A stretch of DNA of 52,897 nucleotides from Trichosphaerium sp. ATCC 40318 (lineage: Eukaryota > Protista > Tubulinea). The translations under genes and the position numbers were made by a program. The notes below the pieces were generated by a model. It saw only the letters and a list, made by a program, of their open reading frames with translations. It did no database searches and was not told where the DNA came from. The stretch lies in contig JALMLS010000449.1 of the NCBI GenBank assembly GCA_038496445.1, positions 1-52,897 on the forward strand. The letters are read 5' to 3'. The first letter of the stretch is position 1, and each line of letters opens with the position of its first letter. This document shows, piece after piece, positions 5,550 to 52,897 of this stretch.

Positions 5550-6315
5550 ATGTCAGCTATAGAAGTCAAAGTAGTTGTAGTCGGAGACGGAGCAGTAGGC
5601 AAAACGTAAGATCCAAAGCGCAATGAACTCTTTTTTTCTTACCTCTTTTCGTAGGGCTTTGCTACTTACATACGCTAAAGGAAAGTTTCCTGAAGGATAC
5701 ACGCCAACAGTTTTGCAAGTGCTTCACTTTTACTCGTTCCTTTTGAACACGTGTTACGAAGAGATTACTTATGTTTACTTTAGTGATAACTATGCGTGTA
5801 CTTTAAACACATCAACAGGACAGGAAATCACTTTGACGCTATGGGATACAGCAGGGTACGCGAAATCTCCGAAAACTATGCAAAAAAATAGTTTATGTTG
5901 TTTTCGAACTATCAATGATTTATGATCTAAGACATGTTCTAGGCAAGAAGAATACGATAGAATAAGACCACTCTCATATGCAAACGCTGGTGTTTTCCTC
6001 GTTTGTTATTCATGTGCCAATGAGAATTCTTTATCAAATGTTAAAGCAAAGTGGATTCCAGAAATTTCACATTATGCTCCCGGTGTTCCTTTTATCTTAG
6101 TAGGAACAAAGTCAGACCTGAAACAGACAATGCCTGACGGTGGTGTATCTACAGAGCAAGCTCAAGCATTGGCTAAAGATCAGGGTGCAGTACAACACAT
6201 GGAATGTTCAGCAAAAACTGACGAAAAAAGTATTAAAGATATTTTTGATCATTCTATTCAAAGCGTTTTACATCCTTCCAAGAAAAAGAAACATAAAAAG
6301 TGCAGTATCTTGTAA
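5550..6315 (+). CDS. Rho/Rac-family small GTPase, 4 exons
   Basis: Spliced: KVVVVGDGAVGKT (G1), YTPTVFDNY (switch I), LWDTAGQEEYDRIRPLSY (G3), LVGTKSDL (G4), ECSAK (G5), polybasic KKKKHKK and CAAX CSIL. Confidence 0.95.
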
Positions 6316-23280: not shown

Positions 23281-26200
23281 CTATGTAATAGGTGGGTTAT
23301 GATCGTCGTCGCGTTCTGGTTCGATTCGTATCGACCTCCACGCGCTTTCCATTAGTTTGCATCTTTTCCTGTATAGTTTCTGATATCGCTGTGTCATTCT
23401 GCGCTGTATGTTCTTGAGTTTGTTGTCCGTGTATTTGATGTCGTAGCCAGCCATGAGGCATTTCACTACGATCGCCTTAGGGATGAAGCAGTCGCCATTG
23501 ATCCATTCTGTATCTGTTTCTTTCATTTTGACTTTTGGGAAGCTTCTGCGAAACTTTTTAGTGGTTTTATGCTTGATTTCTGTTCTGTGTTCTTGGGTGC
23601 AGCTACACTCGTTAAGAATGTGGTTAGTGTCCTCTTTTTCAGCAGTGCATAGTAGGCAGTTGGGGTGTTTGTATTTTGCATTGTACGCTTCTGTGTTATG
23701 TTCTCCTGTGTTCTTGTTCATCTCATATCTACCGCACAGTCGTCTATTGCGCGCCTTCAACATAAAGCGTATGCTTTTGTCGTTCTTTATGGGTTCTTCT
23801 TGTAGTGCTGTGGATATGACCATGTCCTGGTCTTTGTAGTGAGGGAAGTCTTGGTTAAATGCCTTCGTTTCGTTATCTCTGTATCTGTTTTGAATGGTGT
23901 TTCTAATGGATCCTTCTAGTAGGTTGTCGTTAAAGTCATATAGGGAACATTCTAGTGTGGTGCGTCTCTTGGGTTTGGATTCCGGTGGGAGCTCTAGCGC
24001 TTCTTTGGCTAGTCTATCTGCTTCGTCATTACCGTCTATGATCCAGGCAATGTCTTCTCCGAAGGTGTTGTGTAGCGTATTGAGTTCTTGGTATATTTCC
24101 GCGTTTTTGTTGGGGGTTGTTGCTAGCTTTTGTAGTTTTCATTTACGTGGCTGGGGACTTTGAAGAAGGTGACAAGTCCTCCCTGTTTGTTTTTGAGGGA
24201 GATGGCTCTATTCATCTCTTCTATGAGGGCTTTGTTTGGCGCTTTAGCTTTTTGTAGGTGCGTTTTGCCTCTCCACCTAGTGGCACAGTGTATTACGTAT
24301 TTGGAGTCTGTGAAGATGTCTATGTCGTCTTCTCTGTTGGCGTTTTTGATGGCATATGTGGCTGCTTCTAACTCTGCGATGTCGACCGTGTCGCCTGTGA
24401 TTGTTTTGGAGTAATAGTTTCTGTCGTCATCAGGGCCGTAGTATACACCCATACCCGCACCGGGTTGACCGTCTCTCTTGGAGCCGTCTGTCCACACCGC
24501 AAGTTTTTGCTTGTCGGTGCAATTGTAATTGCAAAATTGGAATATTTCGTAGGTGGGATTCATGTTTCGGAGGAGGTACTGTTTCAGATTTGTGGAGTTG
24601 TTTTGGCTGACGATGTTTTTCAGCTTTTGGTAGTTCTGTACTGTTATTGAGGCCAAAGGGCCTGTGAGTTGGTTAAACTCTTTGATGTGTTTTGTAGTGG
24701 CCACATCGGCCCATTTTGAGTCTAGAGGTATGTTTAATTTGGTAAATTTATGGTAGTCGGCGTGGTTTAGAGTATCAACTATTTGATCAGGTACTGTTTC
24801 ATGGTTGACCGGGTTGATTTTAATTTCGTTTAGGAGCTTGACATATGTAGTAATGCGTTCATCGTCTATGTCGTGCACTGCTATTGGAGGTAGTTGTCTG
24901 AGCGTTTCTCCGAGATTGCGTCTGCCTATGCGATCAAGGTATTTGTTATCTTTGAGTCTTTGCCTAGTAGTTTGGCGTGCTATTGAGCCTATGCGCGTGT
25001 TGATGCCCATGCAGTGCATGTTGGCTATGAAGCCGACATTTGAGAGGAGCGAGGGTTGTGTTGCTCCAAAGCCCCCTTCCTTTGGATCTATCCATAGTTG
25101 GCTGTATTTAGTGTATGATGACATGGGAACTGACCAGAAGAGGTTTTTGGCGAGTGCCTTCTTTAACTTGAAGATTTTGCTGTTGGGTATGTGATAGAAG
25201 TTAGCGTGGTATTGTAGTGCTGGGTTAATCACCGTGTTGATGATTTTGCGACGTGCCGTTAACGGGATTTGTCTATGTTGTATTAATGCTAGTCTGTACA
25301 GGTATGCGTTTGAGGCGGCGTTGAGATCTACCGACCAATCTAATTCTGTATTTACGTGTATTCCTAGGTATTTGTAGGACTTGTGTAATCCTATATTTTC
25401 GATTTTAAGGATATTTCCGTTGACTTCAATGTCTATATCACCCGCCTGTGCTAGCGATGACATATATTTGGTTTTTTTGACGTTGATGGATAGTCCATTG
25501 TGTTGGCAGAATTCTTGGAAGGTTTTTACCATATCCTCCATCTCTTCCTTGTTGTTTGAGAGGAATACTAGATCATCGCAATAGGCGAGGATTGGGATTT
25601 TGAGCAGCGCGTTTTTGGCGAATGTGTATCCTTGATAGGTGTTCTGTATGTGTTTAATAATAGGGTTAAGTACTGTGATGAATAGTAAAGGGGAGAGGAT
25701 GTCTCCTTGGCGGACTCCGTTTTTGATTTGGAATTGATCGGAGAGACCGCACGGTGTGAGCAGTTGCGCCGTGCCGTGTTTATATGTGCCTTCTATTGCT
25801 TGAATCATTTTCTTGGGTACTTTGTAGTATGTGAGGGTGTCTTTTATTGACCAGTGTTCTATTGAGTCGAATGCTTTTTTGAGATCAAAGAAGGTGAGGT
25901 GTACATTTTGGTTGTCGTTTTGTTTGTTGTCTTCCATGATGTTAATGAGTGTGTTGACGTGTTCTAGGGTGGATCTTTCTTTACGGAAGCCGTTTTGGAG
26001 ATTGGAAAGGAGGTTGTTGTCTTCCATGAAGACTACTAATCGATTGTAGAGTATTCTTGTGTATATTTTGTGCTGAACGCATAGGAGCGCTATAGGTCGG
26101 TAGTTGTTGGGTGCTGTTTCGTCTGATCCATTTTTGTGTATTAGGCATATGATGGATCTGTTCCAGGAGGAGGGGATGATTCCTGTGGCGTATGCTCGTT

Positions 26201-29200
26201 TGCACACAAGAAAAAGGATGTCGTGGTAACGTTCTGGTAATTTCTTAAGTACTTCCGCCGGTATGCAGTCTTCACCTGCTCTTTTCCATTCTTTGGTGTC
26301 GTGTAGGGCTTGTTCATATTCGCTTCTGGTGATGTCGTGTGTTTTCATTGGTTGTGTGATTGTTGTGTCGTCTTTGAGCCATTTTGGTGTCGGGCCCTTG
26401 GGTTTTGGGCTATTTTTCAGGGCTGAAACTCAGCTAGGCATTACCTTAAAAAATGATGCATATTCCTAACATTTGGCATCAGATGGCAAAATCAAGGCAT
26501 TTGCATTTGGCATTGCCCAATAAAGTAAGGCATTTTTACAAAAAGGCAATGCCTTCATCAAAAAGGCATTAAAACCAGGCATTTTTGGGCATCTTTTGGC
26601 ATTGCATAAAATCAGGTAATGCCTTGTATTGCATTTTTTGGCATTGCATAAAATCAAGTAATGCCCTGTATTGCAAGTACTTTATGCCTTTATTATGCTT
26701 TATTTTTTTAAGCATTATATGCCTTGTATTCCAATTCATATATAAGGCATTGCTTATACTATATCATAGGAACTGATCACATTAAGGAAGTGGTTTAAGC
26801 TAAGTAACAGTCAAACAACTTTTACACTTTTTTTTTCACATCACCTATTGACGTTTTATATAGATAGGCACCTAGAGCTTTTAGTAATTCATGAAATTAG
26901 ACGAAACCACCGCCAAACGAACCGCAGCACCCTATTTCACCTACAACAGTACTAGGAGTGAACTCCGCGATATTTCCAGGACCGCGGAATTCTAACACTA
27001 CAAGGTAAGTTTTTTTTTTTTTTTTTCTACACCATCTCATATTTTCTTTAAGGTTTTTTCAAATGTGGACTTAGGAGTTTTGTGTATTGTATGTGTACTG
27101 TATTATAAAATAAATAGTTGTGTTATTACCTGAAAATGCCCTGGTTTATTAGGCACTGTAGACTATGATAATGCTTTCTTTTTGCCTTCAAAATAAGGCA
27201 TTGATGCATGAGTTATGCCCTAATTTGAAGGGCATAATTCCTAAAAATATGCAGGCAAAACCATTGCAATCTTGTGTACCAGATGCAAGCATTTTTCATC
27301 AAATATGAGGCATTTTTGGAGCAAAAAATAAGGCATTGCCCTGTATTTGCCTTTTTGAATGAGGCAAAAACTAGGCATTTTTGTAAAAAATAAGGCATTA
27401 TTTGATGAAAATGCCTAGGCATTGTCCAAAAATGCCTTGTTGAGTTTCAGCCCTGTTTTGCAGAATCTTTTTCCAGGTTTTGACCAGCAGTTTAAGCTTG
27501 TCTTCTGTGTCGGTGATGAGTTCTTCTGTGTTTGGGTCTACAAGCGCTGCCATATGGGCACGGTTACGTCTGGAGAGGAGGTTGTCGAAGAATTTTTTTG
27601 GTTCATTTTTGTAGTTTTCTATGAGTCTATCGATGTTTTGATGTATGATCCTGCTTTTGACTTTCTCAGCGCGGCGTCTTTGTTGTTTGGCGATGTTGTT
27701 GATCGTGTTTTTTATGAGGATGCGTGCTGTATATTCCACTTTGCCGCGGTATATGTCTAGTATGTTGTGAGTCAATGCCGTCAGCATATTTGGTAACACG
27801 TAGCGATTTCAGCATGACATCTTTCCATTTTGTCCAGTTATGCGTAGATATGTGTTTCCGTTTGTTGATCTTGTTGGCGATCTTCCTAGTTCTTCTTTTT
27901 GCGTTGGCGATTTTGTTAAGTTTCTTATCGAGGAGCTTGCTATTTTTCCTAGCTTTACGGGTGCCCAGGGTCTTGACGCACGAGTCGTAGATGTCTTGGT
28001 TGATTTTTTTCGATATTTCATCAGGCGATGCCTGTTTGTTTTGCAGGAATTTTTTAAGCTCTTCGGCAGTGTCGTCATTAATTTTAAAGTTTTGTAGGGG
28101 TATCAGCACGTGTTTTGCGCTTTTTGATGTACGAATTGTGGGTTTGGCAGTTCGTGGTATGTAAGTCGTTCTGTTGTTTGCACTGAGGTCTGTTTTGTAC
28201 GTGAGTTTGATTGGTACGTGATCGCTGTCAGTAAATGGATTTTGTATGATTTTAGTGTGTAGAATATTGGCTATGAGTGATCTTTTAACCAGGAAGAGGT
28301 TGATATGTGCTTTGGATCGATACATGTTGGTTTTGCTTTGATTGTCATTGCCGTATCGAGTGTATTCCTTCTTATTAGGGAACTTGGCGCGGTATGCGCA
28401 TGTGAGGTTGTGGGCGCTCATGAGTTCTTTGAGCTTTGCGTTTTGTTTTGGCGGTTTTATGTGTACAGTGTCTTTGAGGAGCCACCTGTCTTTGTTAATG
28501 TCTAGCGTGGCGTTGAAGTCTCCACCCATGATGATCTCGTGTTTTTTGTTTTTGTATTTCTTTTTACGTTTCTCGATAATTTTGTTTAATCTCTGAAAAA
28601 AGACTTTACCTTCGCTGAGTGAGCATGGCGCGTACACATTGACAATAAAAATGATGGTTCCTTTATTGGGTTCCATTTCTGTGATGATAAATTTTCTAGA
28701 CGTATCTTTGTATGTATTAACTACAAGCGGCAACAGGGATTTGTGAATAAGCGTAATCGTTCCTTCTGAGGGCCTTGGGTCGAAGTTTGGGTTTTGTTGT
28801 CGTTTTGTATAGAAATTTCAATTTGTTCCATCGTTTTGCCTCTAGATGGCCAATTTTTGTAGCGTCTTTCGTGCGCTTTGTTGCGTCGTTGCTCTAGAGA
28901 GAGAAGGTTGTTAAAGTTTAGGAAGTTGTCTGTGAGTTCTGCGTAGGTGCTCCATTTGTAGTCGGCATTGCGTATGTGTGGTTCTTGGACCAGGACGATG
29001 CCTGCTTTCGCCTTTTTCGCCTGTCTGTAGATGTTGTAGGAGTTATCGCCCCAATTTCCGTTTGCATTGAAAGAAAGGAGCGTAATAGATTCGTTACTGG
29101 TTGGGTATGTATTATCGAGTGCGTACGTGTTGTTTGGGTGGTTTTTCTGATAAGTGTTGAGGTTCCAATTGCACGGTGTCGCTTTCGCTATCCTCGCAAA

Positions 29201-30927: not shown

Positions 30928-32896
30928 CAGGTCTAAAATTTTCGAGCTGTTTTTATGGTAGATACCATGGATTTGTGGTATAATTATACCATTGATTACA
31001 ATTTTATACCACAAATTCCAGTATAATATACCATAAATCACAGGATTTATACCATAAAACAGCCAAATTATACCATAAATATGCAGTAGAAAGTGCGAAT
31101 TTATACCATATTTTTGCACCTGAAAAAATGCAATATATGGTATAATTCTACCATAAAACATGGTATAAAACACAGTATAATACCACAAAGTCTGGTATAT
31201 TATACCTTAAAACTTGGTAGATTATACCACAAAACCAGGTGTATTATACTGTGTAAAAACTGTTCTAATAATAAACCACATTTATTAATACATTTTTTTG
31301 TTTACATCCGTGACCTTTGGTTTTGTCCATATCCTCTTTTGTGGTAGTTGACACATCAAATAACCTTCAAAAAAAATATTGTACTTGCTGTAAGTGCATC
31401 GAATGGACATAGCATGAAAACTAAAAGAAAAATTAGTGAAGGCTTGATGCACAAAATAAATAGTCGTACAAAAATTGCTGTTTTGTTGTGGTGGTGGCAC
31501 TGAGAGAAACAAATGACCTGTGCGGTGGAGCTAAACCAAGACTAAAACAAAGAAATGAAAATAACTGCCAACTTCATCGGAAACAAGTTCTAGCGGAATT
31601 GTACCTGTTAGCTAACACATCTTGGTTTTTTTTTATCATCTATCTAGCTTGGTTAAAACCTATGGCAAGCGGCTTCAAAACAACTACTTTTAGCGTACCT
31701 TGTGTTGTGCGGGCGATAAACTGGACAAGACTTAGTTTTGTGCTCTGACTTAGCCAATTGGTTTACAATATCACTCGTAAGGTCAACGCATGGGTGTGAA
31801 GCCTAAATGCTATCTGTTCTGGCAAATGCGCGCGTTTAGTAGGGAAAAATTCAAAAAAATCCAAAAAATCCAAAAAAAACCAAAAAACTCAAAAAATGGG
31901 TAGGCTCTGAAACAACTTGGCCTTATAGCACTATTCACGCGTTTTAACATGCATTGGAGCGTATATCAAAAATGGCAAAAAAAAATAAATAATTTTGCTC
32001 CTGATTTGGTAAATGAGGCTGTATGGCGTTGATTGAGTGTAAAAATGCCTATGGAGGGGAGAAAAAAATGAGAGCTGGGGAAAAAAACCTCCAATTGGAG
32101 GTTTTTTGCGAATGGGCATTTTTCGAGCACTAAACGCGTTTTTGGTGTGTCTACCACTGTAACGTTCTAACATGGGGTACGTGGAGTGGTTTCTTCCTCA
32201 AATACCATCAATCGGAGAAAATTGTCCAATTTATCCCTAAAACGCCTGTAATTGGGGCGCGTTACCAGATTTCTCTTTTAAAACTGTTTTTCACACATTT
32301 ATATGCCAATTATGTTCAATAACGGCTACTGTCAAAGCATTGTGTGGTATGGCGTTTGCGTAGGTCCAAAGGCTATTAAATCAAGTGTAGACTAAGTGAG
32401 CTTTGACTAACTTATACTTATACGGTATAATACCACGGTATAATACCACATTTTATGGTATAATTATATGGTATAATGCATGGTATACTATACTTTAAAA
32501 TACAGTATAATACCATGGTATAATACTGTGTTTTATGGTATAATTATATGGTATAATGCATGGTATAATATACTTTAAAATGCAGTATAATACCATGGTA
32601 TAGTACCATGTTTTATGGTATAATTATATGGTATAATGCATGGTATAATGTACTGTAAAATGTGGTATAATACCATGGTATAGTACCATGTTTTATGGTA
32701 TAATTATATTCTATAAATTGAAATATGGTATAAACATGGTATAATGGCTGTTATACCATTTGTCCAAAAAACATGGTATTATACCATATTTTATGGTATA
32801 ATTATATGGTATAATTATGGATTATACTGAGCTTGTACCATAAAAGGTGATTATACCATAAAATACGGTATAATACCGTGATAATTTTCAGACCTG
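30928..32896. mobile_element. non-autonomous DNA element, family A copy 1 (CAGGTCT TIRs, GGTATA/TATACC subterminal arrays)
   Basis: Near-identical inverted copy of 46423-48394. Flanks TG / AA do not match. Confidence 0.9.
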
Positions 32897-32932: not shown

Positions 32933-35392
32933 ATGTCTTCTACTGGTACTCTTCTTGCGGATTTTGACCGTTTCTCAGCTATTTCCATCTTACAAAATCT
33001 TTTGCCATTTGGCCAAAACCAGCTGAGAACGGTGGAGGCCCTTGGGGCAGCTTTTCTATGCGGTATCGACTCTCAATTTTACGCTGTTTGGCTGAAAACT
33101 GATGAGGATACACGCAAAGCTTATATCGATTTTCTTCTACATTCATTAGAAAAAGAGGTGGCGGTTCCGCCATTGTTTTATAATCGAAATCACAAACTTC
33201 GTCCTTTGCTTTCTCCTGTACTTCAAGCTATTAACGCACCTTCCCTAGAACCACACCCGCCTGTCGCTCCCACTGAAGCCCCTCCTGCAACTACGCCCTC
33301 TACTGACCCCAAAGTGCTTGCTATCTTGGTTTCTCTACAGGCCAGTATGGATAAAATCCACTCTGAGGTATCTGCAAATTCAGCGGCAATCACGAGAGTC
33401 GCTAATCTCCCAAAGGTGATTACGAATCTCGCTGGTCCTAAGAGTCCGCTGTCTTCTGCTAACACACCTATGTCTGGTAGAGTTCTCTGCCAAGCTACGA
33501 ACGCTGTTGATGTTACTCTTCCAAGTACGTCTTTATCACCTCCTTCCTCCTTTGTCGATTCTGATGTGGGCATAGCGGATCCGCTTAATCGGACCGTTTC
33601 GGCTGGTAGTATGGGACTTGCTGAGAGTGTTTCGAAGGCGCAGCTAGACTAGGTTGAAGCGTCTATTGATAAGCGTTTTCTGAACGTTTTGAAAAGGCAA
33701 TCACCTTCTACTGTTACTTCTTTAACTGATCACAGGCACCGTGCTGGCTCTGCTCAATTGGTTGATGACGAACCACCTGCTAAGCGTCAGAAGACCACTA
33801 AGTACGGCTTTGCACCTGTTATTTTTCCAGGCGAGATGAAGTTTATTAATACTCTTCTTCTCTCACCTTCGGATTGTCGCGCTTTACGTTCAGATATGAC
33901 GTATAGCCCAGCCGAGTTTGCGATGTTAAACATGCGTATGCTGTTAAAGTATCTTGACTTGGTTAAATCCGATCAACTTACTCTTGAAGCGTTCGTTGAT
34001 TACATCACTTATTTGGAGCAAGTCTTCTCACTTAGTTCTTCAGGCCTGAGGTGGACGGGAGTGAGAGGGATAAGATCGATGGATATGCAGTGGAGGTCGC
34101 GAAACTTGTCGATAGGCTCTCGGTGGTGCGATATACCTCTCTTTTTGATTGCTTTGAACTCTGTTCCTGTGAATAATGCTAATCCTAGTACGAATCGCGG
34201 AAAGGGAACCTCTGCAAGCAACTCGGAAAAGAGATCGAATCAGGTCTAAAAAAATATACCAGTTATTTTGGTATATACCACTTTTATACCACTTTTTTAT
34301 ACCAGTTTTTCATGGTATATACCAAAAAAAGCGGTATATTTTGACCGAAATATACCAAAAAAAGTGGTATATTGACCAAATATACCAACAATATACCAAA
34401 AAAAACAGGTATAAAAGCAGAAAATATACCACTTTTTTTCACCAGAAAAAAAAAAATATACCACTTTTTTATACCACTTTTTTTAGGTATATACCACTTA
34501 TATACCACTTTTTTATACCAGTTTTTCATGGTATATACCACTCTTATATACCACTTTATGCCTACTTATGGTACACCTGCAATTCCAGAAAATACACTTT
34601 ATTTAATACACAGTTTGTGAGTTACAAGTTTTGGACAATGTCCACTACAGTTACATTACTATGGGCGTTTGGAAAATTCGTCCATCTCCATGAGCTTTCT
34701 GTACCTACTGTAAAAACATGCTGCGCACCTAATGAAAGTGGTCCCACCTGAATCCATCAATTACTAAGGCCTACGGAGGTCGGTTAATGTATATCAAACG
34801 AAAATAAAATAAAACTTTGTCTGGTACCCACGAACGTCTGTATAATACCTGCAATATAGTTTCCTTAATGTTGGTACTGTAATCAGGTCCTGCGGTTCGA
34901 ATGAGCTTGGTTTGGTTAGATTCTATGATATACTAAGGTCCCTACGCACCGTTCAATGTATGACATCTATGATCGTTCAACAAGAAAACCCATTACCAAA
35001 AAGCTCCTTAATGACCTTCTTGAAGCATACCATAAAAGTGGTATATACCAATAAAAAGGTGGTATATACCACATACCATAAAAAAGTGGTATATACCACT
35101 TTATATACCATTTTTAGAAGGTCTCATTATGTGAATGAAAAGTGGTATATACCACTTCTATATACCACTTTTTTATTCACTTAATTTCTAAAAAAAGTGG
35201 TATTTCAAAATGGTATATACCAGTTCATATACCATTTTGTTGAAAAAAGTGGTATATACCATAAAAAAACTGGTATATACCACTTTAATTTTTAGACCTG
35301 ATGGCTCGTCAAATACGTCAGACACATCTCTAGCTACCTTGAACTCAAAGGGTATTCGAAGATCGAAGAAGGCAGACCAGGCTCAAAAGTGA
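32933..35392 (+). pseudogene. DIRS gag-like ORF1, premature TAG at 33650 and interrupted by a MITE
   Basis: ORFs 32933 and 33689 are in the same frame. YITYLEQV..MDMQWRS..RW resembles the DIRS gag helical motif. The frame continues after removing 34241-35300 plus 2 bp. Confidence 0.7.
34241..35300. mobile_element. non-autonomous DNA element, family C (CAGGTCTAAAA TIRs, GGTATATACC arrays, 2-bp TSD AT)
   Basis: AT on both flanks; removal restores the gag frame (..KRSN|GSSNTS..). Confidence 0.9.
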
Positions 35393-35446: not shown

Positions 35447-37462
35447 ATGGCGCCGCTTTTATCGCGTGTCTCCACTTGGAATAAATTTCTTTCTGACCAT
35501 CCTGATTGTTCGTTGATTCTTCGTTGGTTGTGCCATGGTGTGAGTGTCGTTTCTGAAGTTACTACGTTTGATAATGTTGTTTGTGACAATTACAAATCGT
35601 GTAATGATTTCGAGTCTTTGCTTGATGATGATGTTGAGCATGAGTTAGCAAAAGGGAGGATTTGTGCGGTCTCGTCGGTTCCGGTTAGGATCAATGCGTT
35701 AGGCGTTCTGAAGAAGCCAAACGGTAAGGCACGACGTTTGATTGATTTGAGCTCTCCCAAAGGTGCCTCTGTTAACGATTTCAATGAACCTCCTCATTTC
35801 ACAATGATGGCGCTTAGAGATACCATTAGGTTCATGTTCCTCTTGGGTATGGCTTGCTGGATGGCTCTTGTTGATATCAGCGAAGCCTACAGAGCTGTTC
35901 CAATGGCACGTGACTCTTGGCAATTTCTAGCGTTCAAATGGGCGTTTGGTATATTGATACACGCTTGCCATTTGGCCTTAACATTGCACCGTTTGTCTTT
36001 TGCAAGATATCTGAAGCAATTAAGGACATCTTTGCTCGTGACATGTGGGTCTACATCGCGGTTTATGTTGATGACTTCATTGTGCTTGCGAAATCGAGAG
36101 AGAAGTGTCGTGAAATCCGAGACAAACTCATTAATCTTCTCAGGTCTCTAGGGTTCACCATAAAGCCTGAGAAAGTTACTGAACCTTCAACTACCATTCA
36201 GTTCTTAGGCATCGAGCTCGACTCAGTGAAGCGAGAGGCTCGACTGTCGGAGGTTCACCTCAAAGAGCTGAAAGGTTCGTTGAAGCTCTTCCTTACACGC
36301 ACTAGAGCTCGCAAACGCGAAATCCAAGTGTTAGCTGGTAAGCTCAATTGGGCTTCCAGCGTAGTGTTCGGAGGACGCACGTACTTACGCCGTATACTCA
36401 ATAGAATGAATTCGGTGAAGAGGAATACCCATTGGGTACACCTGAACAACGAATTTCGTTCGGATATTGAGTGGTGGTTGAACTTCATTTCTGAATTCAA
36501 CAGTTGTGCTGTTTTAGTGGATCCGTTACCGGAAAACCACGAATTTTTCGCTGCAGACACTTCTGACTATATAGGGGATAGGGTGCAGCATACACTTCTG
36601 ACTATATAGGGGATAGGGTGCAGCAGATGCTTCAGACTATATAGGGGATAGGGTGCAGCATACACTTCTGACTATATAGGGGATAGGGTGCAGCAGATGC
36701 TTCAGACTATATAGGGGATAGGGTGCAGCATACACTTCTGACTATATAGGGGATAGGGTGCAGCATACACTTCTGACTATATAGGGGATACAGTGCAATA
36801 AATGCTTCAAACTATATTTATTCTTATTTTATTCCATTGTTCATCAGTATATAGGGGAATAAGCGACACATGTTTACATTAATATCATTCAATGAACATT
36901 ATGCAGCAACCATTAATATCATTCTCATAATAGTTTTCCAAGGTTGTAAACATTCAAAGAAACAAGCATTTAAGTAACTTTTTCATGGACTTTTTTGATT
37001 ATTTTATACTTTTTTATCTATATAGGGGATTAGGTAACATTATTATTATTATACTGGGGATTTGACGTCTACTATGCTGGTCATTGGATCTATGGTGAAT
37101 TTGATCAGTTACAGCGTAGCATGTCTATCGCGTGGCGCGAGATATATGCTTTACATGTTGGTATTAAAAATTTTTCTCACCTGTTTAGTGGCAAATCCAT
37201 GATGAATGCACACACTGATAACACAAACGCCAAGGCGGCTGTCAATCACCTAACCTCTAAAGTAGTTGGCGCGATGCCTCTGGTTTGTGATATTCATTTG
37301 TGGCAAGCTTCTCATAATTTCAGAATCATGTTTAAATATATTCGCAGTGCGGATAATATTATAACTGATCTGTTATCACGAAACGACCTTTCAGGTGCTC
37401 GTCAGTATTGCACCGCTAATGGAATTCCTTTTGATAAGAATCCATGGATAGAGACCGTTTAG
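35447..37462 (+). pseudogene. DIRS reverse transcriptase / RNase H
   Basis: KKPNGKARRLIDLS, VDISEAYR, LPFGL..AP, YVDD, FLGIELDS; RNase H ADTSD|WGF, IAWREIYA, HTDN, ITDLLSR. Frameshift near 35940; insertion at 36568-37054. Confidence 0.9.
36568..36812 (+). repeat. 7 x 35-bp tandem repeat at the start of a 487-bp insertion (36568-37054)
   Basis: Unit TATATAGGGGATAGGGTGCAGCA-(TACACTTCTGAC or GATGCTTCAGAC) in the order A,B,A,B,A,A,degenerate. The insertion ends in (ATT)n. Confidence 0.9.
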
Positions 37463-38436
37463 CCAATTGGCAAAACACCCTCCTTGAGGCGTCTCTTGAG
37501 GTTGGTACTTGGCGCTCTTATCGGTCAGGTTGGCGTGCGTTTTTGAAAGCCTGCATTCTCTTGGGTTCTGCTCCGTTACCAATCAACCAACAATTGTTGT
37601 GCGATTGTGCTACAATTATGTCAATTATTTTTAATCTAGCGCCACAAACCATAAACCGTTAATTTTCTTCTGTACGGTTCTATGTTCAGCTATATGGGTT
37701 CCCCAGACCTAATATGGCGTCTATGTTTCGCTTGCAGCTCTTGCTACAAGGGATAGCGAAATCAAAAGGCGTGGGTGTTAATAGGAAGTTTTCAATTACA
37801 CCTACTCACTTACTTCGTTTTAGGCAACTTCTCAACCTAGATGATGCGAAAGCGTTCATCTTCTACACAGCTTCTCTGGTTGCTTTTGATTGTTTTCTTC
37901 GATCAGGGCAATTGGTGCCTAAAAGTGCCAATGCCTTCGTTGAGGGTTACAACATCAGCTGTCAGAGTTTGAAGGAAACAGTAGATGGGTACTTGTTAAC
38001 TTTCACAAAAACTAAAACCATTGTTGATCGTTCAAGAATCTTGACACTACAGATGGTAGAGTCAGATTCTGGTATCTCACCTGTACCCTTCGTACGACTT
38101 CTTTTGTCTCATGTTTCACCCGCGTCTGGTTCTATTTTTGCTTGCACAATTAATGGAAAGACGTGGACTTTAACATATAAAATGTTTGTAGCAGAGACAA
38201 AGAAATTGATGAGTCGCTTGGGTTACGACTCCTCAAAGTTTGCTGGCCACTCATACAGAAGAGGTGGCGCTACGTGGGCGTTTCGTATGGGCGGTACACT
38301 ACCGGTTATCAAGTCTCTTGGTGACTGGAAGTTGGACGCAGTCCTACTTTACATAGAGATTGACGAGTTGCAAAAACGTAGGATTAAGAAACGACTAGCT
38401 CTTAATACTACGATTGCTTTGGGCGAGGACACGTAG
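37444..38436 (+). pseudogene. DIRS tyrosine recombinase, premature TAA at 37660
   Basis: FLRSGQL (R), KTKT (K), GHSYRRGGAT (HxxR), LGDWK..VLLYI (W, Y); the two track ORFs share a frame. Confidence 0.92.
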
Positions 38437-41074: not shown

Positions 41075-43145
41075 GTAGAAAATTGGATGCTTTACACAAA
41101 GAAATAATAACTTATGTTGACCATCTACTTGCTCAAAGAGATCCAAAGTTGGTTAATGCATATAGAAAAAGGTATTCAAATCCATCTCAATCACCAACAA
41201 AGGCACTGAGGAATAAAATTGTTGTCGACAGAGTAATACAACTGTATTTGAGTCTTTCAAAGAACTCACCAGTTCGTAAAAGTGCATTGCTCTCCTTCTT
41301 TGATGGCATTGATGATAGTACGTAATTGTGACTACCTTTTGGTGCTGATTATATCAGAGAATACAGCTAAGATGATCAGCCAAACAACTCAAGCAGTAAA
41401 CAAAGCCAGACAAAATATTAGAAGCTGTCCACCTCTTGATTACTTTCTACAAGACCTTGGGTTCAGAAGGGACAAACTAGGAAATAAGGGGAATACAATT
41501 TTGGAATGGCTTGAGATAAATTGTGTTGTTCCATCGGGTAAGTACATGTTGAAATAGTCCACCAATTTTGGCTAAAATAAAAATGTGTTTATTAACAAAA
41601 CCATTTAGGTAGTACAAATCGGCGTTTTAGAGGCACAAAAAAAGCAATGTTTCTAACATATTGTGCATGGGCAAAAGAACAAGGTTTTGACACAGTGAGC
41701 AGGCCAGTGTTTGAGCGTTTTGTAGATGCCGAACAAATTCAAGTCAGAGAGGGTGATAAATTTGAATCTAAGGAAGCTATTAAGCTTCAAGAAAAGGTAA
41801 CAGAGTTGAATGAAAAGGTGACCAGTGGCATACCTGAGGAAAGTCTACAAAAGCTACGAAAAGAAATAGCCAACCTAAAAACAATAGATGAGTTTGCACG
41901 TGCTAGGATATATGAGTATGTAAAGGATCACCTTGATCTTGAAGCAAAACCTGATAGAGGTGTTATCACGCTAGATTTTACAGCTTCTCAAACTAACATG
42001 GAAACTAACTACATTATCCTTGTCTTGGTTTTAGCAATGAAGAACAAAATAGAATTGCCAGAAACATTGAAGAAGTATATGGTGTCACCTACAAAACCAC
42101 CATCAACATCAAATATAACTCTCGACAAACCTCAAAAAAAGAAAAGAAAAAGACGCACTAAGAAAGAGATGGAAAGAGATCAAGCAAAAAACCCTAAGAA
42201 ACAACGAATGTCACACACACAAAAGCTTAAACAAGATGCTAAACCAACTCCACAATTGAAAAGTATTCCATCTATTAACCGCTCAACATACAAACCTTGT
42301 GTTACATACTTACACTTCACTGTTAAAAAAGAACAAAAGAATAAAAAGGTAAAACAAACTGCTGACTATGTACAGTGGGTTCTAGAGCTTTTATACCAAC
42401 ATAAGTTCTTTGACCTGTTCAAAGAAATTATTTTATGGCACGTACCTTTTTTGTTGTTTCATTTTCTCTTTATTCAGCAACTAACCCTTTACAGGTCAGA
42501 TGGATGTGGCAAACATTTTAAAACATACCCTATACATGCTGTTGTTGCCAATATTCAACAGCGCTTAAAAACACATGATCCAGGAGCCAATATTATATGG
42601 CGGTTTTTGGCACCACTTCGTGCTCACAACAGAGCTGATGGTTCCACAGCAAGCTCTAAAAAGCTACAAAATAAGTACATACAAAATTTCTTTGTACTGA
42701 GTGAACTGTCGCACCTTGCATATGCTTGTCATACTCTCAAAAATACGTACATGTTAGAAGCCATGGTGAATGATTTTTCTGTTCTCGAACCAGCTGAACC
42801 TATTGGTGATACATTTATGCGAAATGCATTTCAATTTAGCTACGGCATACCAGAAAATGGTTTTGATGACTGTGAACACACGTGCATTAGCAAAAAACAA
42901 ATGCAAGTACTAATTTTCTGTTAAATATAGTTGTGATCCTAAAGGCCCAAACAGAACATGTAACCACAATTGTGGGGGTTGTAGACGTGATCCTATCCGA
43001 TTTTTGCCTGTGACGGTAGCCATGCGTTATGGTTCTGAGTTGGTGCTTGAAGACAAGAGGATACAACTCAGCTATAATGGTCCCAAACCAACAAAAAAAG
43101 ATGGATGGAATACTAACAGTGGTAAAATGAAAACGAGATTTTAGA
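41075..43145 (+). mobile_element. intron-containing Sola-like DDD transposase gene
   Basis: Spliced motifs VITLDF, IILW|SDGCGKHFK and WRFLAPLRAHNRADG match the WSDG..FK / W.FF...HGK..DG pattern of Sola-type transposases. Start and end uncertain. Confidence 0.65.
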
Positions 43146-46422: not shown

Positions 46423-48394
46423 CAGGTCTGAAAATTATCACGGTATTATACCGTATTTTATGGTATAATCACCTTTTATGGTACAAGCTCAGTATAATCC
46501 ATAATTATACCATATAATTATACCATAAAATATGGTATAATACCATGTTTTTTGGACAAATGGTATAACAGCCATTATACCATGTTTATACCATATTTCA
46601 ATTTATAGAATATAATTATACCATAAAACATGGTACTATACCATGGTATTATACCACATTTTACAGTACATTATACCATGCATTATACCATATAATTATA
46701 CCATAAAACATGGTACTATACCATGGTATTATACTGCATTTTAAAGTATATTATACCATGCATTATACCATATAATTATACCATAAAACACAGTATTATA
46801 CCATGGTATTATACTGTATTTTAAAGTATAGTATACCATGCATTATACCATATAATTATACCATAAAATGTGGTATTATACCGTGGTATTATACCGTATA
46901 AGTATAAGTTAGTCAAAGCTCACTTAGTCTACACTTGATTTAATAGCCTTTGGACCTACGCAAACGCCATACCACACAATGCTTTGACAGTAGCCGTTAT
47001 TGAACATAATTGGCATATAAATGTGTGAAAAACAGTTTTAAAAGAGAAATCTGGTAACGCGCCCCAATTACAGGCGTTTTAGGGATAAATTGGACAATTT
47101 TCTCCGATTGATGGTATTTGAGGAAGAAACCACTCCACGTACCCCATGTTAGAACGTTACAGTGGTAGACACACCAAAAACGCGTTTAGTGCTCGAAAAA
47201 TGCCCATTCGCAAAAAAACCTCCAATTGGAGGTTTTTTTCCCCAGCTCTCATTTTTTTCTCCCCTCCATAGGCATTTTTACACTCAATCAACGCCATACA
47301 GCCTCATTTACCAAATCAGGAGCAAAATTATTTATTTTTTTTTGCCATTTTTGATATACGCTCCAATGCATGTTAAAACGCGTGAATAGTGCTATAAGGC
47401 CAAGTTGTTTCAGAGCCTACCCATTTTTTGAGTTTTTTGGTTTTTTTTGGATTTTTTTGGATTTTTTTGAATTTTTCCCTACTAAACGCGCGCATTTGCC
47501 AGAACAGATAGCATTTAGGCTTCACACCCATGCGTTGACCTTACGAGTGATATTGTAAACCAATTGGCTAAGTCAGAGCACAAAACTAAGTTTTGTCCAG
47601 TTTATCGCCCGCACAACACAAGGTACGCTAAAAGTAGTTGTTTTGAAGCCGCTTGTCATAGGTTTTAACCAAGCTAGATAGATGATAAAAAAAAACCCAA
47701 GATGTGTTAGCTAACAGGTACGATTCCGCTAGAACTTGTTTCCGATGAAGTTGGCAGTTATTTTCATTTCTTTGTTTTAGTCTTGGTTTGGCTCCACCGC
47801 ACAGGTCATTTGTTTCTCTCAGTGCCACCACCACAACAAAACAGCAATTTTTGTACGACTATTTATTTTGTGCATCAAGCCTTCACTAATTTTTCTTTTA
47901 GTTTTCATGCTATGTCCATTCGATGCACTTACAGCAAGTACAATATTTTTTTTGAAGGTTATTTGATGTGTCAACTACCACAAAAGAGGATATGGACAAA
48001 ACCAAAGGTCACGGATGTAAACAAAAAAATGTATTAATAAATGTGGTTTATTATTAGAACAGTTTTTACACAGTATAATACACCTGGTTTTGTGGTATAA
48101 TCTACCAAGTTTTAAGGTATAATATACCAGACTTTGTGGTATTATACTGTGTTTTATACCATGTTTTATGGTAGAATTATACCATATATTGCATTTTTTC
48201 AGGTGCAAAAATATGGTATAAATTCGCACTTTCTACTGCATATTTATGGTATAATTTGGCTGTTTTATGGTATAAATCCTGTGATTTATGGTATATTATA
48301 CTGGAATTTGTGGTATAAAATTGTAATCAATGGTATAATTATACCACAAATCCATGGTATCTACCATAAAAACAGCTCGAAAATTTTAGACCTG
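46423..48394. mobile_element. non-autonomous DNA element, family A copy 2 (2-bp TSD CA)
   Basis: CAGGTCT..AGACCTG termini; CA on both flanks; inverted near-identical copy of 30928-32896. Confidence 0.92.
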
Positions 48395-48666: not shown

Positions 48667-49596
48667 CAGGGCTGAGACTAAATAAGGTTTTTTTTACAAA
48701 AGTCATTTTTTTGCCACCAAATACAGCCTTATTTTTCATTAAATTGCCTTGTTTTTGCCAAAAAAAATGAGCAAATATGAGGCATTGCCTTGTAATTTTG
48801 GGCTTTGGAGCCTCATATTTGGGCCAAATAGCAAGCAACTGGTTCACTAATTAGCCTTAAAATAGCCTGCATTGTTGGTCCAATAATGCCTCATTTTTAG
48901 TGCAACAATGAGGCATTTTTGCCCTCAATTTTTGGGCATAACTCAGGCACCATATACTCATAAAACAAAGCTTTATATAGGCATACACAATAGTGATTCA
49001 TTTATTAAAGTACAGTACACAAAACACAAAAAACTTCAATGTCCTCCATGTGAAAAAAATCCTTTAGCTAGAAAAAAAAATTAACAAATTATTGGTATAA
49101 TTTTCGCGGACTGGAAAAATGGTTTAAAGTACCTGTACTCCTCTTGTAGGTGCATTTGGGTGCTGCGGTTCGAATGGCGGCGGTTTCGTTAGAATCCATA
49201 AAATACTAAGCGCATGGTGACACTATCTATATAAAACGTCAGTAGTAAATGAAAAAAATGTTTAGGAAGTGTTGGTGTGGTGGAAACTTACCTTAAACCA
49301 ATGTATCCTTAATGTACAATGTGTACACAACCAATGCCTAATTAGTGCCTGTAAATTTAAGGCTGGCAATGCATAAAAAAACTAGGGCAGGCATTGCCTA
49401 AAAAAAACAAAGCATTGCAACAATTAAGGCAATGCCCAACAAAGCCTTATTTCAATGCTTGATTTTTGCCTTTTCTGCCATTGCCTTTGCAAGATCAGGC
49501 ATTGCCATTTTTTAATGCCTGATTTTTGCCATCAATGCCTGATTTTAAAAAAATGCCTTCATATTTAAGGCAAAGCCTTGTTTAGTTTCAGCCCTG
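48667..49596. mobile_element. non-autonomous DNA element, family B copy 1 (CAGGGCTGA TIRs, 2-bp TSD CA)
   Basis: TIRs, AGGCA/TGCCT subterminal repeats; inserted in the SWIM His codon. Confidence 0.92.
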
Positions 49597-49926
49597 CACA
49601 TTATTGCTGTTTCACTTTTTGAGCAAGATTATTCTGCTGAAACAGTTGTACAAAAGCAAGCCATTCACGCTTTACATGGTAAGTAACATCAACAGTATAT
49701 TTAATAATTATTGCAGAGCATGAAGAGAACATTCCTGAGTTAGACAAGGTAACAGCTCGTAAAAATGACACTCAAAAACGAAAACGTAACAATAAGAGAA
49801 AAAGAAAGTCAAAAAAAGAGGAAGAACCTGCCTCTCCATCACCCTCACAAAAGTGCTCAAAGTCATCCAATTCAATCTATTCAAGCAAATCTATGTCTCA
49901 ATTCTATGTTGAAGACAAAGTGTCAG

Positions 49927-50855
49927 CAGGGTTGAAACTAAATAAGGCTTTTTTTGCAAAAGCCATTTTTTTGCCACCAAATACAGCCTTATTTTTCATT
50001 AAATTGCCTTGTTTTTGCCAAAAAAAATAAGCAAATATGAGGCATTGCCTTGTAATTTTGGGCTTTGGAGCCTCATATTTGGGCCAAATAGCAAGCAACT
50101 GGTTCACTAATTAGCCTTAAAATAGCCTGCATTGTTGGTTCAATAATGCCTCATTTTTTGTGCAACAACAAGGCATTTTTGCCCTCAATTTTTGGGCATA
50201 ACCCAGGCACCATATACTCATAAAACAAGGCTTTATATAGGCATACAATAGTGATTCATTTATTAAAGTACAGTACACAAAACACAAAAAACTTCAATGT
50301 CCTCCATGTGAAAAAAAACCTGTAGCTAGAAAAAAAAATTAACAAATTATTGGTATAATTTTCGCGGACTGGAAAAATGGTTTAAAGTACCTATACTCCT
50401 GTTGTAGGTGCATTTGGGTGCTGCGGTTCGAATGGCAGTGGTTTCGTTAGAATCCATAAAATACTAAGAGCGTGGTGACGGCGTCTATATAAAACGTCAG
50501 TAGTAAATGAAAAAAAATGTTTAGGAAGTGTTGGTGTGGTGGAGACTTACCTTAAACCAATGTATCCTTAATGTACAATGTGTACACAACCAATGCCTAA
50601 TTGGTGCCTATAAATTTAAGGCTGGCAATGCATAAAAAAACTAGGGCAGGCATTGCCTAAAAAAAACAAGGCATTGCAACAATTAAGGCATTGCCCAACA
50701 AAGCCTTATTTCAATGCCTGATTTTTGCCTTTTCTGCCATTGCCTTTGCAAAATCAGGCATTGCCATTTTTGCATGCCTGATTTTTGCCATCAATGCCTG
50801 ATTTTAAAAAAATGCCTTCATATTTAAGGCAAAGCCTTGTTTAGTTTCAGCCCTG
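49927..50855. mobile_element. family B copy 2
   Basis: Direct, slightly diverged copy of 48667-49596; flanks AG / GG (one mismatch). Confidence 0.9.
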
Positions 50856-51176
50856 GGTGAACTATCTGAAGTGCCAATTGTGCTACAAGTACAACAAAGT
50901 AAAAAACAATTGTTTTCATAATCTGTTCTCTGACTACTCTTAGCGAAGACATGCTCTACTTCAAAATTGTACAAAGTGATTGTTGCTGGACATGCTAAAA
51001 TAACACCACGAAAAAGGACTCAAACACGTTGCTATGGACAAAAGTAAGAACAAGTACAAAAGTGTAAATAAAAACCTAATTAAATGTCACACTGTCACAA
51101 TAATGACACATGTGGGTCTTCTATATATGTAAATCACAGCTATTGCAAGTGGCAATCAAAAAAAAAAGTAGCAGAG

Positions 51177-51450
51177 CAGGGAAATATCCACCAGTTGGGA
51201 TAATTCCCCAGAAAGTGAGGATATTTCCCACTTTGCAACCAACAATGCAGGCTATTTTAAGGCTAATTAGTGAACCAATTGCTTGCTATTTGGCCCAAAT
51301 ATGAGGCTCCAAAGCCCAAAATTACAAGGCAAAGCCTCATATTTGCTCATTTTTTTTGGCAAAAACAAGGCAATTTGGTGAAAAATAAGGCTGTATTTGG
51401 TGGTAAAAAAATGACTTTTGTAAAAAAAGCCTTATTTAGTTTCAGCCCTG
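51177..51450. mobile_element. truncated family B end fused to a short CAGGGAAATATCC..GGATATTTCCC hairpin
   Basis: About 51237-51450 matches the family B terminus in inverted orientation. Confidence 0.7.
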
Positions 51451-51815
51451 TTGTTAATCGAGTTGCTTCTTCGTTGTTGTGATTCATGTGAGAATAGAAT
51501 AAAGTCGGTTTGGTCAACTCTGTTCAAATGTGTGAAATAATCTATTCATTCAATAAATGCAGACTCACTTTTTTTCTGAATTTTTCAAAAAAAAAAATTC
51601 GAAAAATTAGAATTCAATACAAAAACCAAATGCCCACCAATGGATCACTATATGTGAGCAAAGGTCAGGTTCTAGTTCCAAGCACAGCAAGGACTCGACT
51701 GTAAGTGAACCAGGCGCTTTCTAGTTAAGTGGACTGCCCTAGCTATGCATCTTTCTGCATCTTTCTACACTTTCGAATTTTTGTTTTCAGAAAATTTAAA
51801 AAAAACTATGGTCCC

Positions 51816-51968
51816 AATAAATGTGGTTTTATTATTAGAACAGTTTTTACATGGTATAATACACCTGGTTTTGTGGTATAATCTATCAAGTTTTAAGGTA
51901 TAATATACCAGGCTTTATGATATTATACTGTGTATTATACCATGTTTTATGGTAGAATTATACCATCA
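51816..51968. mobile_element. diverged family A subterminal fragment
   Basis: Matches about 48036-48185; interrupted by family B copy 3. Confidence 0.75.
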
Positions 51969-52897
51969 CAGGGCTGAAACTAAACAAGGCTTTGCCTTAA
52001 ATATGAAGGCATTTTTTTAAAATCAGGCATTGATGGCAAAAATCAGGCATTAAAAAATGGCAATGCCTGATCTTGCAAAGGCAATGGCAGAAAAGGCAAA
52101 AATCAAGCATTGAAATAAGGCTTTGTTGGGCATTGCCTTAATTGTTGCAATGCTTTGTTTTTTTTAGGCAATGCCTGCCCTAGTTTTTTTATGCATTGCC
52201 AGCCTTAAATTTACAGGCACTAATTAGGCATTGGTTGTGTACACATTGTACATTAAGGATACATTGGTTTAAGGTAAGTTTCCACCACACCAACACTTCC
52301 TAAACATTTTTTTCATTTACTACTGACGTTTTATATAGATAGTGTCACCATGCGCTTAGTATTTTATGGATTCTAACGAAACCGCCGCCATTCGAACCGC
52401 AGCACCCAAATGCACCTACAAGAGGAGTACAGGTACTTTAAACCATTTTTCCAGTCCGCGAAAATTATACCAATAATTTGTTAATTTTTTTTTCTAGCTA
52501 AAGGATTTTTTTCACAAGGAGGACATTGAAGTTTTTTGTGTTTTGTGTACTGTACTTTAATAAATGAATCACTATTGTGTATGCCTATATAAAGCTTTGT
52601 TTTATGAGTATATGGTGCCTGAGTTATGCCCAAAATTGAGGGCAAAAATGCCTCATTGTTGCACTAAAAATGAGGCATTATTGGACCAACAATGCAGGCT
52701 ATTTTAAGGCTAATTAGTGAACCAGTTGCTTGCTATTTGACCCAAATATGAGGCTCCAAAGCCCAAAATCACAAGGCAATGCCTCATATTTGCTCATTTT
52801 TTTTGGCAAAAACAAGGCAATTTGATGAAAAATAAGGCTGTATTTGGTGGCAAAAAAATGACTTTTGTAAAAAAAGCCTTATTTAGTCTCAGCCCTG
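51969..52897. mobile_element. family B copy 3 (inverted, almost identical to copy 1)
   Basis: CAGGGCTGAAACT..AGTCTCAGCCCTG; the window ends exactly on the TIR. Confidence 0.92.

Follow-up and report, generated by a model that had tools for sequence, protein, structure and literature searches.

A promoter-like cassette shared by families of CAGG-ended miniature transposons in the amoeba Trichosphaerium sp. ATCC 40318

Non-autonomous cut-and-paste transposons encode nothing, and the locus described here raises the question of why several families of such elements carry the same small stretch of DNA at their centre. The window, that is, the whole stretch of DNA analysed, comprises 52,897 nucleotides (nt) of contig JALMLS010000449.1 from Trichosphaerium sp. 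ATCC 40318; it is eukaryotic, transposon-rich and 38% GC. The genome assembly searched holds 70.3 Mb in 642 contigs, and the published Trichosphaerium draft is described as 70.87 Mbp at 37.69% GC, with no mention of transposons (PMC10521059). A sequence-only reading of the window had noticed that three families of miniature inverted-repeat transposable elements (MITEs), named B, C and D, share a conserved core within what resembled a spliced mini transcription unit, and had proposed that the elements maintain a non-coding RNA cassette across transposase specificities. The analysis reported here leads to a different account, to which we give about even chances: the cassette would be the retained, and possibly still used, RNA polymerase II (Pol II) promoter, leader and 3′ end of an ancestral transposon gene, shared by descent among families B, D and E and by transfer in family C.

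The conserved core and the cassette around it

The core is carried by non-autonomous elements of about 0.7-1.06 kb that start with CAGG, end with CCTG and are mostly flanked by 2-bp target duplications. As befits MITEs, their longest internal open reading frames (ORFs) are shorter than 70 codons, and the elements contain no transposase ORF. The motif CGAACCGCAG occurs five times in the window, at 26918(+), 34890(-), 49163(-), 50421(-) and 52393(+), where 0.85 occurrences are expected and none of 100 shuffles reaches five; all five positions and strands are those first reported. When the whole genome was scanned with a 31-place pattern of the core, 173 matches were obtained (100 of which were listed), against 0 for the reversed pattern used as a control. 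All 30 core loci in one sample are MITE-sized, and 60 out of 60 sampled loci are element copies, with no host gene among them. The core-bearing elements of the window are as follows.

26418..27455 (+): family D element, 1038 bp; termini CAGGGCTGAAAC / GTTTCAGCCCTG; TTTT on either flank
34241..35300 (-): family C element, 1060 bp; termini CAGGTCTAAAAA ... TTTTTAGACCTG; 2-bp duplication AT; inside a DIRS-like retroelement
48667..49596 (-): family B copy 1, 930 bp; core at 49159-49189
49927..50855 (-): family B copy 2, 929 bp; core at 50417-50447
51969..52897 (+): family B copy 3, 929 bp, its end being the window end; core at 52376-52406

Elsewhere in the genome, the core is borne by a fourth family, E (724 bp, terminus CAGGGCTAAAAC). 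About 50 B elements were counted genome-wide, together with at least 40 D matches at 96-100% identity. The parts of the cassette are given below for D and, in the last two lines, for C, which holds two cassettes named C1 and C2.

26849..26864 (+): cAMP response element-like (CRE-like) TGACG and TATA-like box, TGACGTTTTATATAGA; the TATA starts 26 nt before the A of TTAGTA
26881..26886 (+): TTAGTA, initiator-like; CTTAGTA in the consensuses; kept in all families
26891..26995 (+): micro-ORF of D, 34 codons; frame not kept between families
26901..26931 (+): conserved core of D, ACGAAACC-N6-A-NN-CGAACCGCAG-N-ACC; about +20 to +50 of the putative transcript
27005..27052 (+): GT..AG interval of D, 48 nt, AAG/GTAAGT ... 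TTTAAG/G
27109..27114 (+): AATAAA, resembling a poly(A) signal; hexamer at an equivalent place in B, C and E
34849..34937 (-): C1 cassette; CTTAGTA, ATG-less leader, core at 34886-34916, then donor CAG/GTATTA
34659..34795 (-): C2, a second, diverged cassette about 170 bp downstream of C1; TATA-like box, CCTTAGTA, ATG at 34757

On the sense strand, the core is CpG-rich and G-poor. Upstream of it, TGACGTTTTATATAGA is identical in D and in 3 of 3 B copies, as had been claimed, and the spacing from the TATA-like box to TTAGTA is the same in B, D, E and C1. We infer that TTAGTA is the transcription start. Downstream, the GT..AG interval and the AATAAA of D read as they had been described, and the three short frames over the core are also as first written. 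The size and signals of the D interval make it a plausible intron, and the donor- and acceptor-like sites of the cassettes resemble those of real introns in a neighbouring gene of the genome. The B donor lies about 36 nt upstream of the D donor, so that the proposed introns are not positionally homologous and the "intron" does not count among the conserved features. Four families (B, C, D and E) have AATAAA together with a related 3′ segment. The promoter-like, mRNA-type mini unit of the sequence-only reading is thus present, in that a CRE-like TGACG, a TATA-like box at −26 from CTTAGTA, splice-type sites and AATAAA can all be recognised; as far as sequence signals go, these include what would be expected of a Pol II mRNA unit, namely a TATA box at a fixed distance from the initiator, splice signals and a poly(A) signal. 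Taken as a whole, the cassette resembles an mRNA-type gene that has only its ends left: a core promoter and leader come first, a 3′ untranslated end follows, and the middle is missing. A promoter of the small nuclear RNA (snRNA) type was rejected. The upstream regions of 8 U6 and 8 U2 genes define the snRNA promoter of this genome by GCAATG(C/A)CATTT at about −80, ACCACAAT at about −60 and an A/T box at −30, and the boxes of these 16 genes are absent from the cassette.

The cassette also stands out by its dinucleotide composition. Its CpG observed/expected ratio is 1.05-1.45 against a window average of 0.78, while the arms of B, D and E and the left arm of C reach 0.00 over stretches of 241-428 bp at 28-38% GC (for example 26418-26786 and 27170-27455), and the remaining sequence of C has a ratio of 0.44. 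Once B and C copies have inserted, divergence at CpG sites runs 4-6 times higher than at the remaining sites. Because they are lost after insertion yet present in every family consensus, the CpGs follow the pattern seen in an active, protected promoter; neither inheritance from an expressed parent nor a role in cis is at odds with such a pattern. GpC, for its part, is 2-3-fold over-represented in the arms of B, D and E.

Conservation between families and decay within them

The five families considered (B, C, D, E and a further family, G) all have CAG...CTG termini. B and D both end in CAGGGCTGAAAC...GTTTCAGCCCTG terminal inverted repeats (TIRs) and align with each other across 695 bp at 66%. 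B, D and E have in common CAGGGCT termini and arrays of GGCAT/ATGCC motifs in their arms, while C and G have GGTATA arms; those of C are GGTATATACC palindromes, and its termini read CAGGTCT. Since B, D and E share ends and arm motif, there are two groups of binding motifs and not three. Of the "three different families" first described, two specificity groups therefore remain, B/D/E and C, and D and B are not independent of each other.

In sliding windows along pairwise alignments of the family consensuses, the core forms the peak of identity (0.85 for B-D, B-E and E-C, and 0.78 for B-C), whereas other parts of the interior score 0.35-0.65. Between families, no indel interrupts the stretch from about −66 to +94, while its flanks are indel-rich, and the first 80 nt or so of the unit are better kept between families than the remaining interior. 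Nothing of the kind is seen when copies of one family are compared. The per-site share of copies that are off consensus amounts, for core, left arm and right arm, to 0.0136, 0.0115 and 0.0094 in D, to 0.0326, 0.0117 and 0.0193 in B, and to 0.0075, 0.0070 and 0.0113 in C; these samples were picked via the core, which biases them toward core conservation, opposite to the result seen. With core divergence equal to, close to or above that of the arms, inserted copies decay neutrally, and whatever keeps the core must then act only on the copies that found families. The expectation that the core should be more conserved than the rest of the interior is thus borne out between families and fails within them. 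Individual copies do not maintain the core, contrary to what had been stated of the elements, and they display the neutral decay that the sequence-only reading had itself named as speaking against its proposal.

Core and termini do not tell the same story about how the families are related. Over the 30-nt core, identity is 0.90 for E-C, C1 being nearest to E, and 0.93 for B-D; over the termini, E matches B and D at 0.69-0.72 and C matches none (about 0.53). C2, for its part, aligns with B at 54% nucleotide identity without gaps. This different grouping, together with the tandem cassettes of C, points to the transfer of a module into C, and the simplest account is that C gained an E-like cassette beside its own older one, as in gap-repair template switching. 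The claim of conservation across transposase specificities then comes down to family C, whose cassette is E-like and whose ends are unrelated to those of E. Transfer and descent suffice to explain it, and the sharing across specificities is largely their product.

The core-less family G, of which the window holds two copies, served as a negative control.

46423..48394 (+): family G element, 1972 bp; termini CAGGTCTGAAAA; GGTATTATACC-type arms; 2-bp duplication CA
30928-32896 (-): second copy of family G

G has CAGGTCT ends, like C, and is present in at least 40 copies genome-wide. Its unique interior of 1.2 kb is full-length in at least 40 copies, which form two subfamilies (about 95-100% and 87-91% identity). 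No core is detectable in G, and a cassette remnant picked out by eye failed a shuffle test (z 0-3, short T-rich matches). This family speaks against the proposition that all CAGG elements need the core. G also carries a perfect 28-nt palindrome at 47212-47239.

Origin and possible role of the cassette

If the cassette derives from the two ends of an ancestral gene, each element would be a non-autonomous cut-and-paste transposon of about 1 kb, with a central mini-gene and arms made of short repeated binding motifs. The core would form the first 50 nt or so of a transcribed leader, lying right behind a Pol II core promoter composed of the CRE-like motif, the TATA-like box at −26 and CTTAGTA. After the leader would come the intron-like interval, itself short, then a brief final segment and AATAAA; the gene would have kept both of its ends and lost its middle. 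B, D and E would constitute one lineage, as their same termini and GGCAT arms suggest, and C would have picked up an E-like cassette by recombination or template switching, beside the older C2. In the copies that seed families, a spacing-dependent promoter and leader would be expected to keep a fixed length and to be conserved above background between about −45 and +50; after insertion, copies would decay neutrally. A residual promoter or first exon of the parental transposase had been named beforehand as the alternative to the non-coding RNA proposal. It is now favoured without being proven: the neutral decay is seen, and no parent gene was found.

Several findings weigh against this gene-end origin. 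The mini transcription unit is itself read from sequence signals. No autonomous partner combining CAGG ends, the cassette and a long ORF was found among the hAT, Harbinger, Tc1-like, B-pair and E loci examined (models for mariner, pogo, Mutator-like and P elements were not searched), and in consequence we infer the origin rather than read it from a parent. The terminus pattern of B gave 101 matches corresponding to about 50 elements, all near 929 bp or else nested or truncated; the oversized or unpaired cases comprise a nested C element (contig C297) and truncations, among them one beside a host MLH-like gene (C247) and one beside another repeat (C75). On contig C572 (8800-13495), a B copy is truncated at position 835; beyond it lie the decayed remains of a hAT transposase gene with introns and then, at the contig end, sequence resembling large-subunit rRNA. 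Among 22 genome matches to the hAT model PF05699, one lies near a listed core or B-terminus match, outside that truncated B copy. All E copies are at most 765 bp long. The Tc1-like model DDE_3 gave seven matches; TIRs of 207 bp bound the element examined, which lacks both CAGG ends and the core. Four Harbinger loci (DDE_Tnp_4) were read; they have TIRs starting with TGGAATTGACTCAG.., no core and no CAGG[GT]CT ends. The peptide of the micro-ORF has no genuine relative, a profile search of its alignment against 1.84 billion proteins having returned two matches, both low-complexity repeats. Finally, the collinearity of B, D and E extends about 100 nt beyond the core. These families may therefore descend from one ancestor that was already deleted, in which case the conservation of the core would have acted in non-autonomous lineages, and this favours a function in cis.

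Such a function is the basis of an account that we hold unlikely but well worth weighing, in which the cassette is a CpG-island-like, active Pol II promoter that would keep the centre of the element open or unmethylated for a transposase acting in trans, the copies that keep or acquire it being those that amplify. The core is then the peak of conservation between families even though inserted copies are unselected, and C has gained a second cassette. No parent was found, and yet copies within B, C and D show identities of about 98-99%, so that they were recently mobile. The CpG excess set within zero-CpG arms, with CpGs that decay 4-6 times faster in B and C copies and persist in the consensuses, also argues for this account. 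Against it stands family G, which resembles C in its ends and arms and has no detectable core, yet amounts to at least 40 copies; the fixed spacing could equally have been inherited from an autonomous ancestor. To our knowledge, no DNA transposon needs an internal promoter in cis, which was likewise counted against this account. A related and also doubtful possibility is that promoter and leader form an exchangeable, selected module, needed in cis by master copies (to stay unmethylated or accessible, or to produce a short mobilisation RNA) and passed on by recombination; this would account for a cassette that outlives the arms and for the absent parent gene. Selection for a Pol II non-coding RNA made from the cassette, whether a small-RNA precursor, a decoy or a transposition cofactor, is quite improbable in our view. 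The promoter-, splice- and poly(A)-like signals around the core are kept as nucleotides and not as a peptide, as this would require. No sign of a structured RNA appears: RNAalifold on the core alignment gave an energy of 0 and 0 pairs, with only −3.6 kcal/mol for the antisense strand, so that neither a consensus structure nor covariation is seen. The sense strand folds worse than shuffles (z +0.55 to +1.27), and Rfam returned 0 matches at gathering score (best E = 1.1, with E up to 10 allowed). The intron positions that differ between D and B, the neutral decay of copies, and a promoter unlike those of the genome's snRNAs were all set against it. None of eight element ORFs had an exact counterpart in a collection of 15 billion proteins. 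In all these searches, exons and frames were used singly. The non-coding RNA cassette first proposed is therefore not upheld.

A coding first exon, either the N-terminus of a transposase (M-D-S-x-x-T-T-x-I-R-x-A-A) or a functional micropeptide, appears very improbable. In its favour, the block is gapless, an ATG is present in B, D and C2, and B and C2 are identical at 9 of 18 residues in the ORF frame versus 5-6 of 17 in the other two frames, including an arginine for which the two use different codons, CGA and AGG (if mismatches are placed at random, P is about 0.003). The mismatches between B and C2 fall 7, 9 and 9 by codon position, without the third-position excess that coding would predict, and their similarity in frame is a weak hint of past coding. 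The frame is interrupted by an in-frame TAG in E, it has no ATG in E or C1, and its non-synonymous to synonymous changes within families (19:6 in D and 20:1 in B, versus about 3.5:1, or 3.6:1 in D, expected for random change) are neutral or worse. No purifying selection is thus detected on the micro-ORF; the low-complexity matches of the profile search also speak against a protein. The suggestion that the constraint is at the level of nucleotides stands, in that a conserved peptide does not account for the conservation. Hardly credible, finally, is a host-gene capture of the Pack type or a Pol III site resembling a TFIIIC B box. The interior is unique, CpG-rich and unlike the arms, as a captured fragment might be, but the sampled core loci, all of them element copies, include no host gene. 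The tRNA B box has a well-known consensus, and GGTTCGAAT, the reverse complement of the most conserved 9-mer, fits 9 of its 11 positions. A tRNA search of the cassette found no tRNA or tRNA-like fold, the stems around the loop-like 7-mer are not complementary, D deviates within the box, and T runs of at least 4 occur early in the B and E leaders, which disfavours Pol III. A wider search added no relative: scans of metagenomes (120 loci) and viral contigs with the core patterns gave chance matches only.

What this analysis adds is that copies decay neutrally within families, that C holds the C2 cassette, that cassette and termini group the families differently, that family G has no detectable core, that CpG content sets the cassette apart from the arms, and that a census of possible parents among the loci examined found none. 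Should the cassette indeed derive from the ends of an ancestral gene, it would represent ordinary transposon biology in a genome whose repeats are undescribed. Even so, an unclassified, CAGG-ended group that duplicates 2 bp is thereby defined, with at least five families in which no transposase can be seen, and research on this amoeba, for which genetic tools are lacking, gains a compact candidate for a Pol II core promoter. Were the elements, which encode nothing, to need the cassette in cis, this would be a rare example of an internal promoter under selection in cut-and-paste transposons, and the competence of a transposon could be linked in a testable way to CpG content and methylation.

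Relation to known elements and genomic setting

The target duplications and termini do not place these elements cleanly in a superfamily. The 2 flanking bases match in 29 of the 41 two-ended copies, against 6.2 expected; the dinucleotides duplicated are TT, TA, AT, TG, CA, AA, AC and CT. Clear duplications of 3-4 bp (TAC, GCA, TTA, CATG) are seen in some copies, and none of the 41 matches at 5-8 bp. The CAGGGCTGAAAC terminus fits the YARNG pattern of hAT elements and is near the end of Ac, a hAT element whose terminus is CAGGGATGAAA; short subterminal motifs in the arms are a further likeness. The fit to hAT is not clean: the duplication is of 2 bp and not of 8 bp, and no hAT transposase linked to these ends was found, the hAT loci examined having other ends or lying outside the element. 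The three hAT families examined end in TAATGATG.., TAGTGGTTG.. or TAACGTTC.. and have no core. With the CMC superfamily (CACTA, Mirage, Chapaev), the CAGG elements have in common short target duplications, those of Mirage being of 2 bp in the Repbase classification, and the subterminal repeat arrays known from CACTA. A search for the Transposase_21 model (PF02992) gave 0 genome matches, as did its control, the model being largely built on plant CACTA and liable to miss non-plant members. Chapaev duplicates 3-4 bp and CMC ends are invariably 5′-CAC...GTG-3′ (PMC4079192); the duplications of 2-4 bp seen here would fit, but the CAG...CTG ends differ, and the fit to CMC is not clean. Tc1/mariner was set aside as well, since eight different dinucleotides are duplicated rather than TA alone and the DDE_3 element examined has neither CAGG ends nor the core (models for mariner and pogo were not searched), and PIF/Harbinger, including ISL2EU, because no linked DDE_Tnp_4 lies inside CAGG ends in the four loci. 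With hAT-like ends, a CMC-like duplication length and a Tc1/mariner-like length, the CAGG elements are an unclassified group with no clean fit to any superfamily.

The arrangement nevertheless has well-known parallels. Maize Ds and dSpm and rice mPing, internally deleted derivatives of Ac, En/Spm and Ping, likewise keep their TIRs and subterminal motif arrays, have lost the transposase, are moved in trans and hold pieces of both ends of the gene inside. They differ from the elements described here, for which no parent is at hand, the gene ends are what is best conserved between families, and one family, C, has two cassettes of different origin. Deleted P elements of the KP type, in which promoter and first exons remain, produce a repressor; the cassette similarly keeps a promoter-like segment and a putative 5′ exon and may be transcribed. 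Its frame, however, is of 22-36 codons, unconserved and under no purifying selection, which makes a repressor protein unlikely. Short interspersed nuclear elements (SINEs) provide another likeness, as mobile non-coding repeats whose internal promoter is the part best kept and whose conservation is seen at the level of lineages while copies decay. SINEs have Pol III A and B boxes, and their RNA-based copying needs the promoter, whereas the CAGG elements have TIRs and a promoter of the TATA/initiator type; we know of no step in the movement of TIR elements that needs transcription.

The window contains a long interspersed nuclear element (LINE), a DIRS-like element and an integrase-like ORF in addition to the CAGG elements.

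24123-28733 (-): LINE interrupted by D; endonuclease frame at 27666-28733, reverse transcriptase (RT)/RNase H frame at 24123-26348
35917-36609: RT of the DIRS-like element interrupted by C; weak tyrosine-recombinase match at 37714-38436
41647-42924 (+): ORF of 425 codons; 0 Pfam families over threshold; integrase-like motifs and a faint Tf2-type SH3 match
51238..51450 (+): 5′-truncated B fragment; 3′ arm only, without the core

Element D is inserted between the endonuclease and RT frames of the LINE, and the 425-codon ORF may be the integrase gene of a different mobile element. Three full B copies and the B fragment lie within 4.3 kb (48667-52897), in and around GGTATTATACC-type repeat arrays, a pile-up that suggests local hopping or a preferred landing zone. 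Similar pile-ups of elements occur on many small contigs (C460, C468, C481 and C485). On C460, core matches at 592, 2209, 9411 and 11028 belong to D and B-like copies arranged as mirror images about a point near 5810, which represents either a large inverted duplication or an assembly artefact.

Genes encoding His-Cys box nucleases were considered as a partner, three of the 21 such loci in the genome lying 1.2-3.2 kb from a core-bearing element. They were rejected, as the gene examined is outside the B element and the three orientations are inconsistent. On contig C374 (19800-24300, positions 1582-2650 of this interval), an intron-containing His-Cys box gene of the I-PpoI-like kind starts 46 bp past the 3′ end of a B copy and in the same orientation. 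Lastly, the U6 upstream element GGCAATGCCATTTC (about −82 to −70) holds a 9-mer, GGCAATGCC/GGCATTGCC, of which the arms of B and D contain 4-5 repeats in each orientation (for example at 49380-49560); its presence in both places may be due to chance or to a shared DNA-binding fold.

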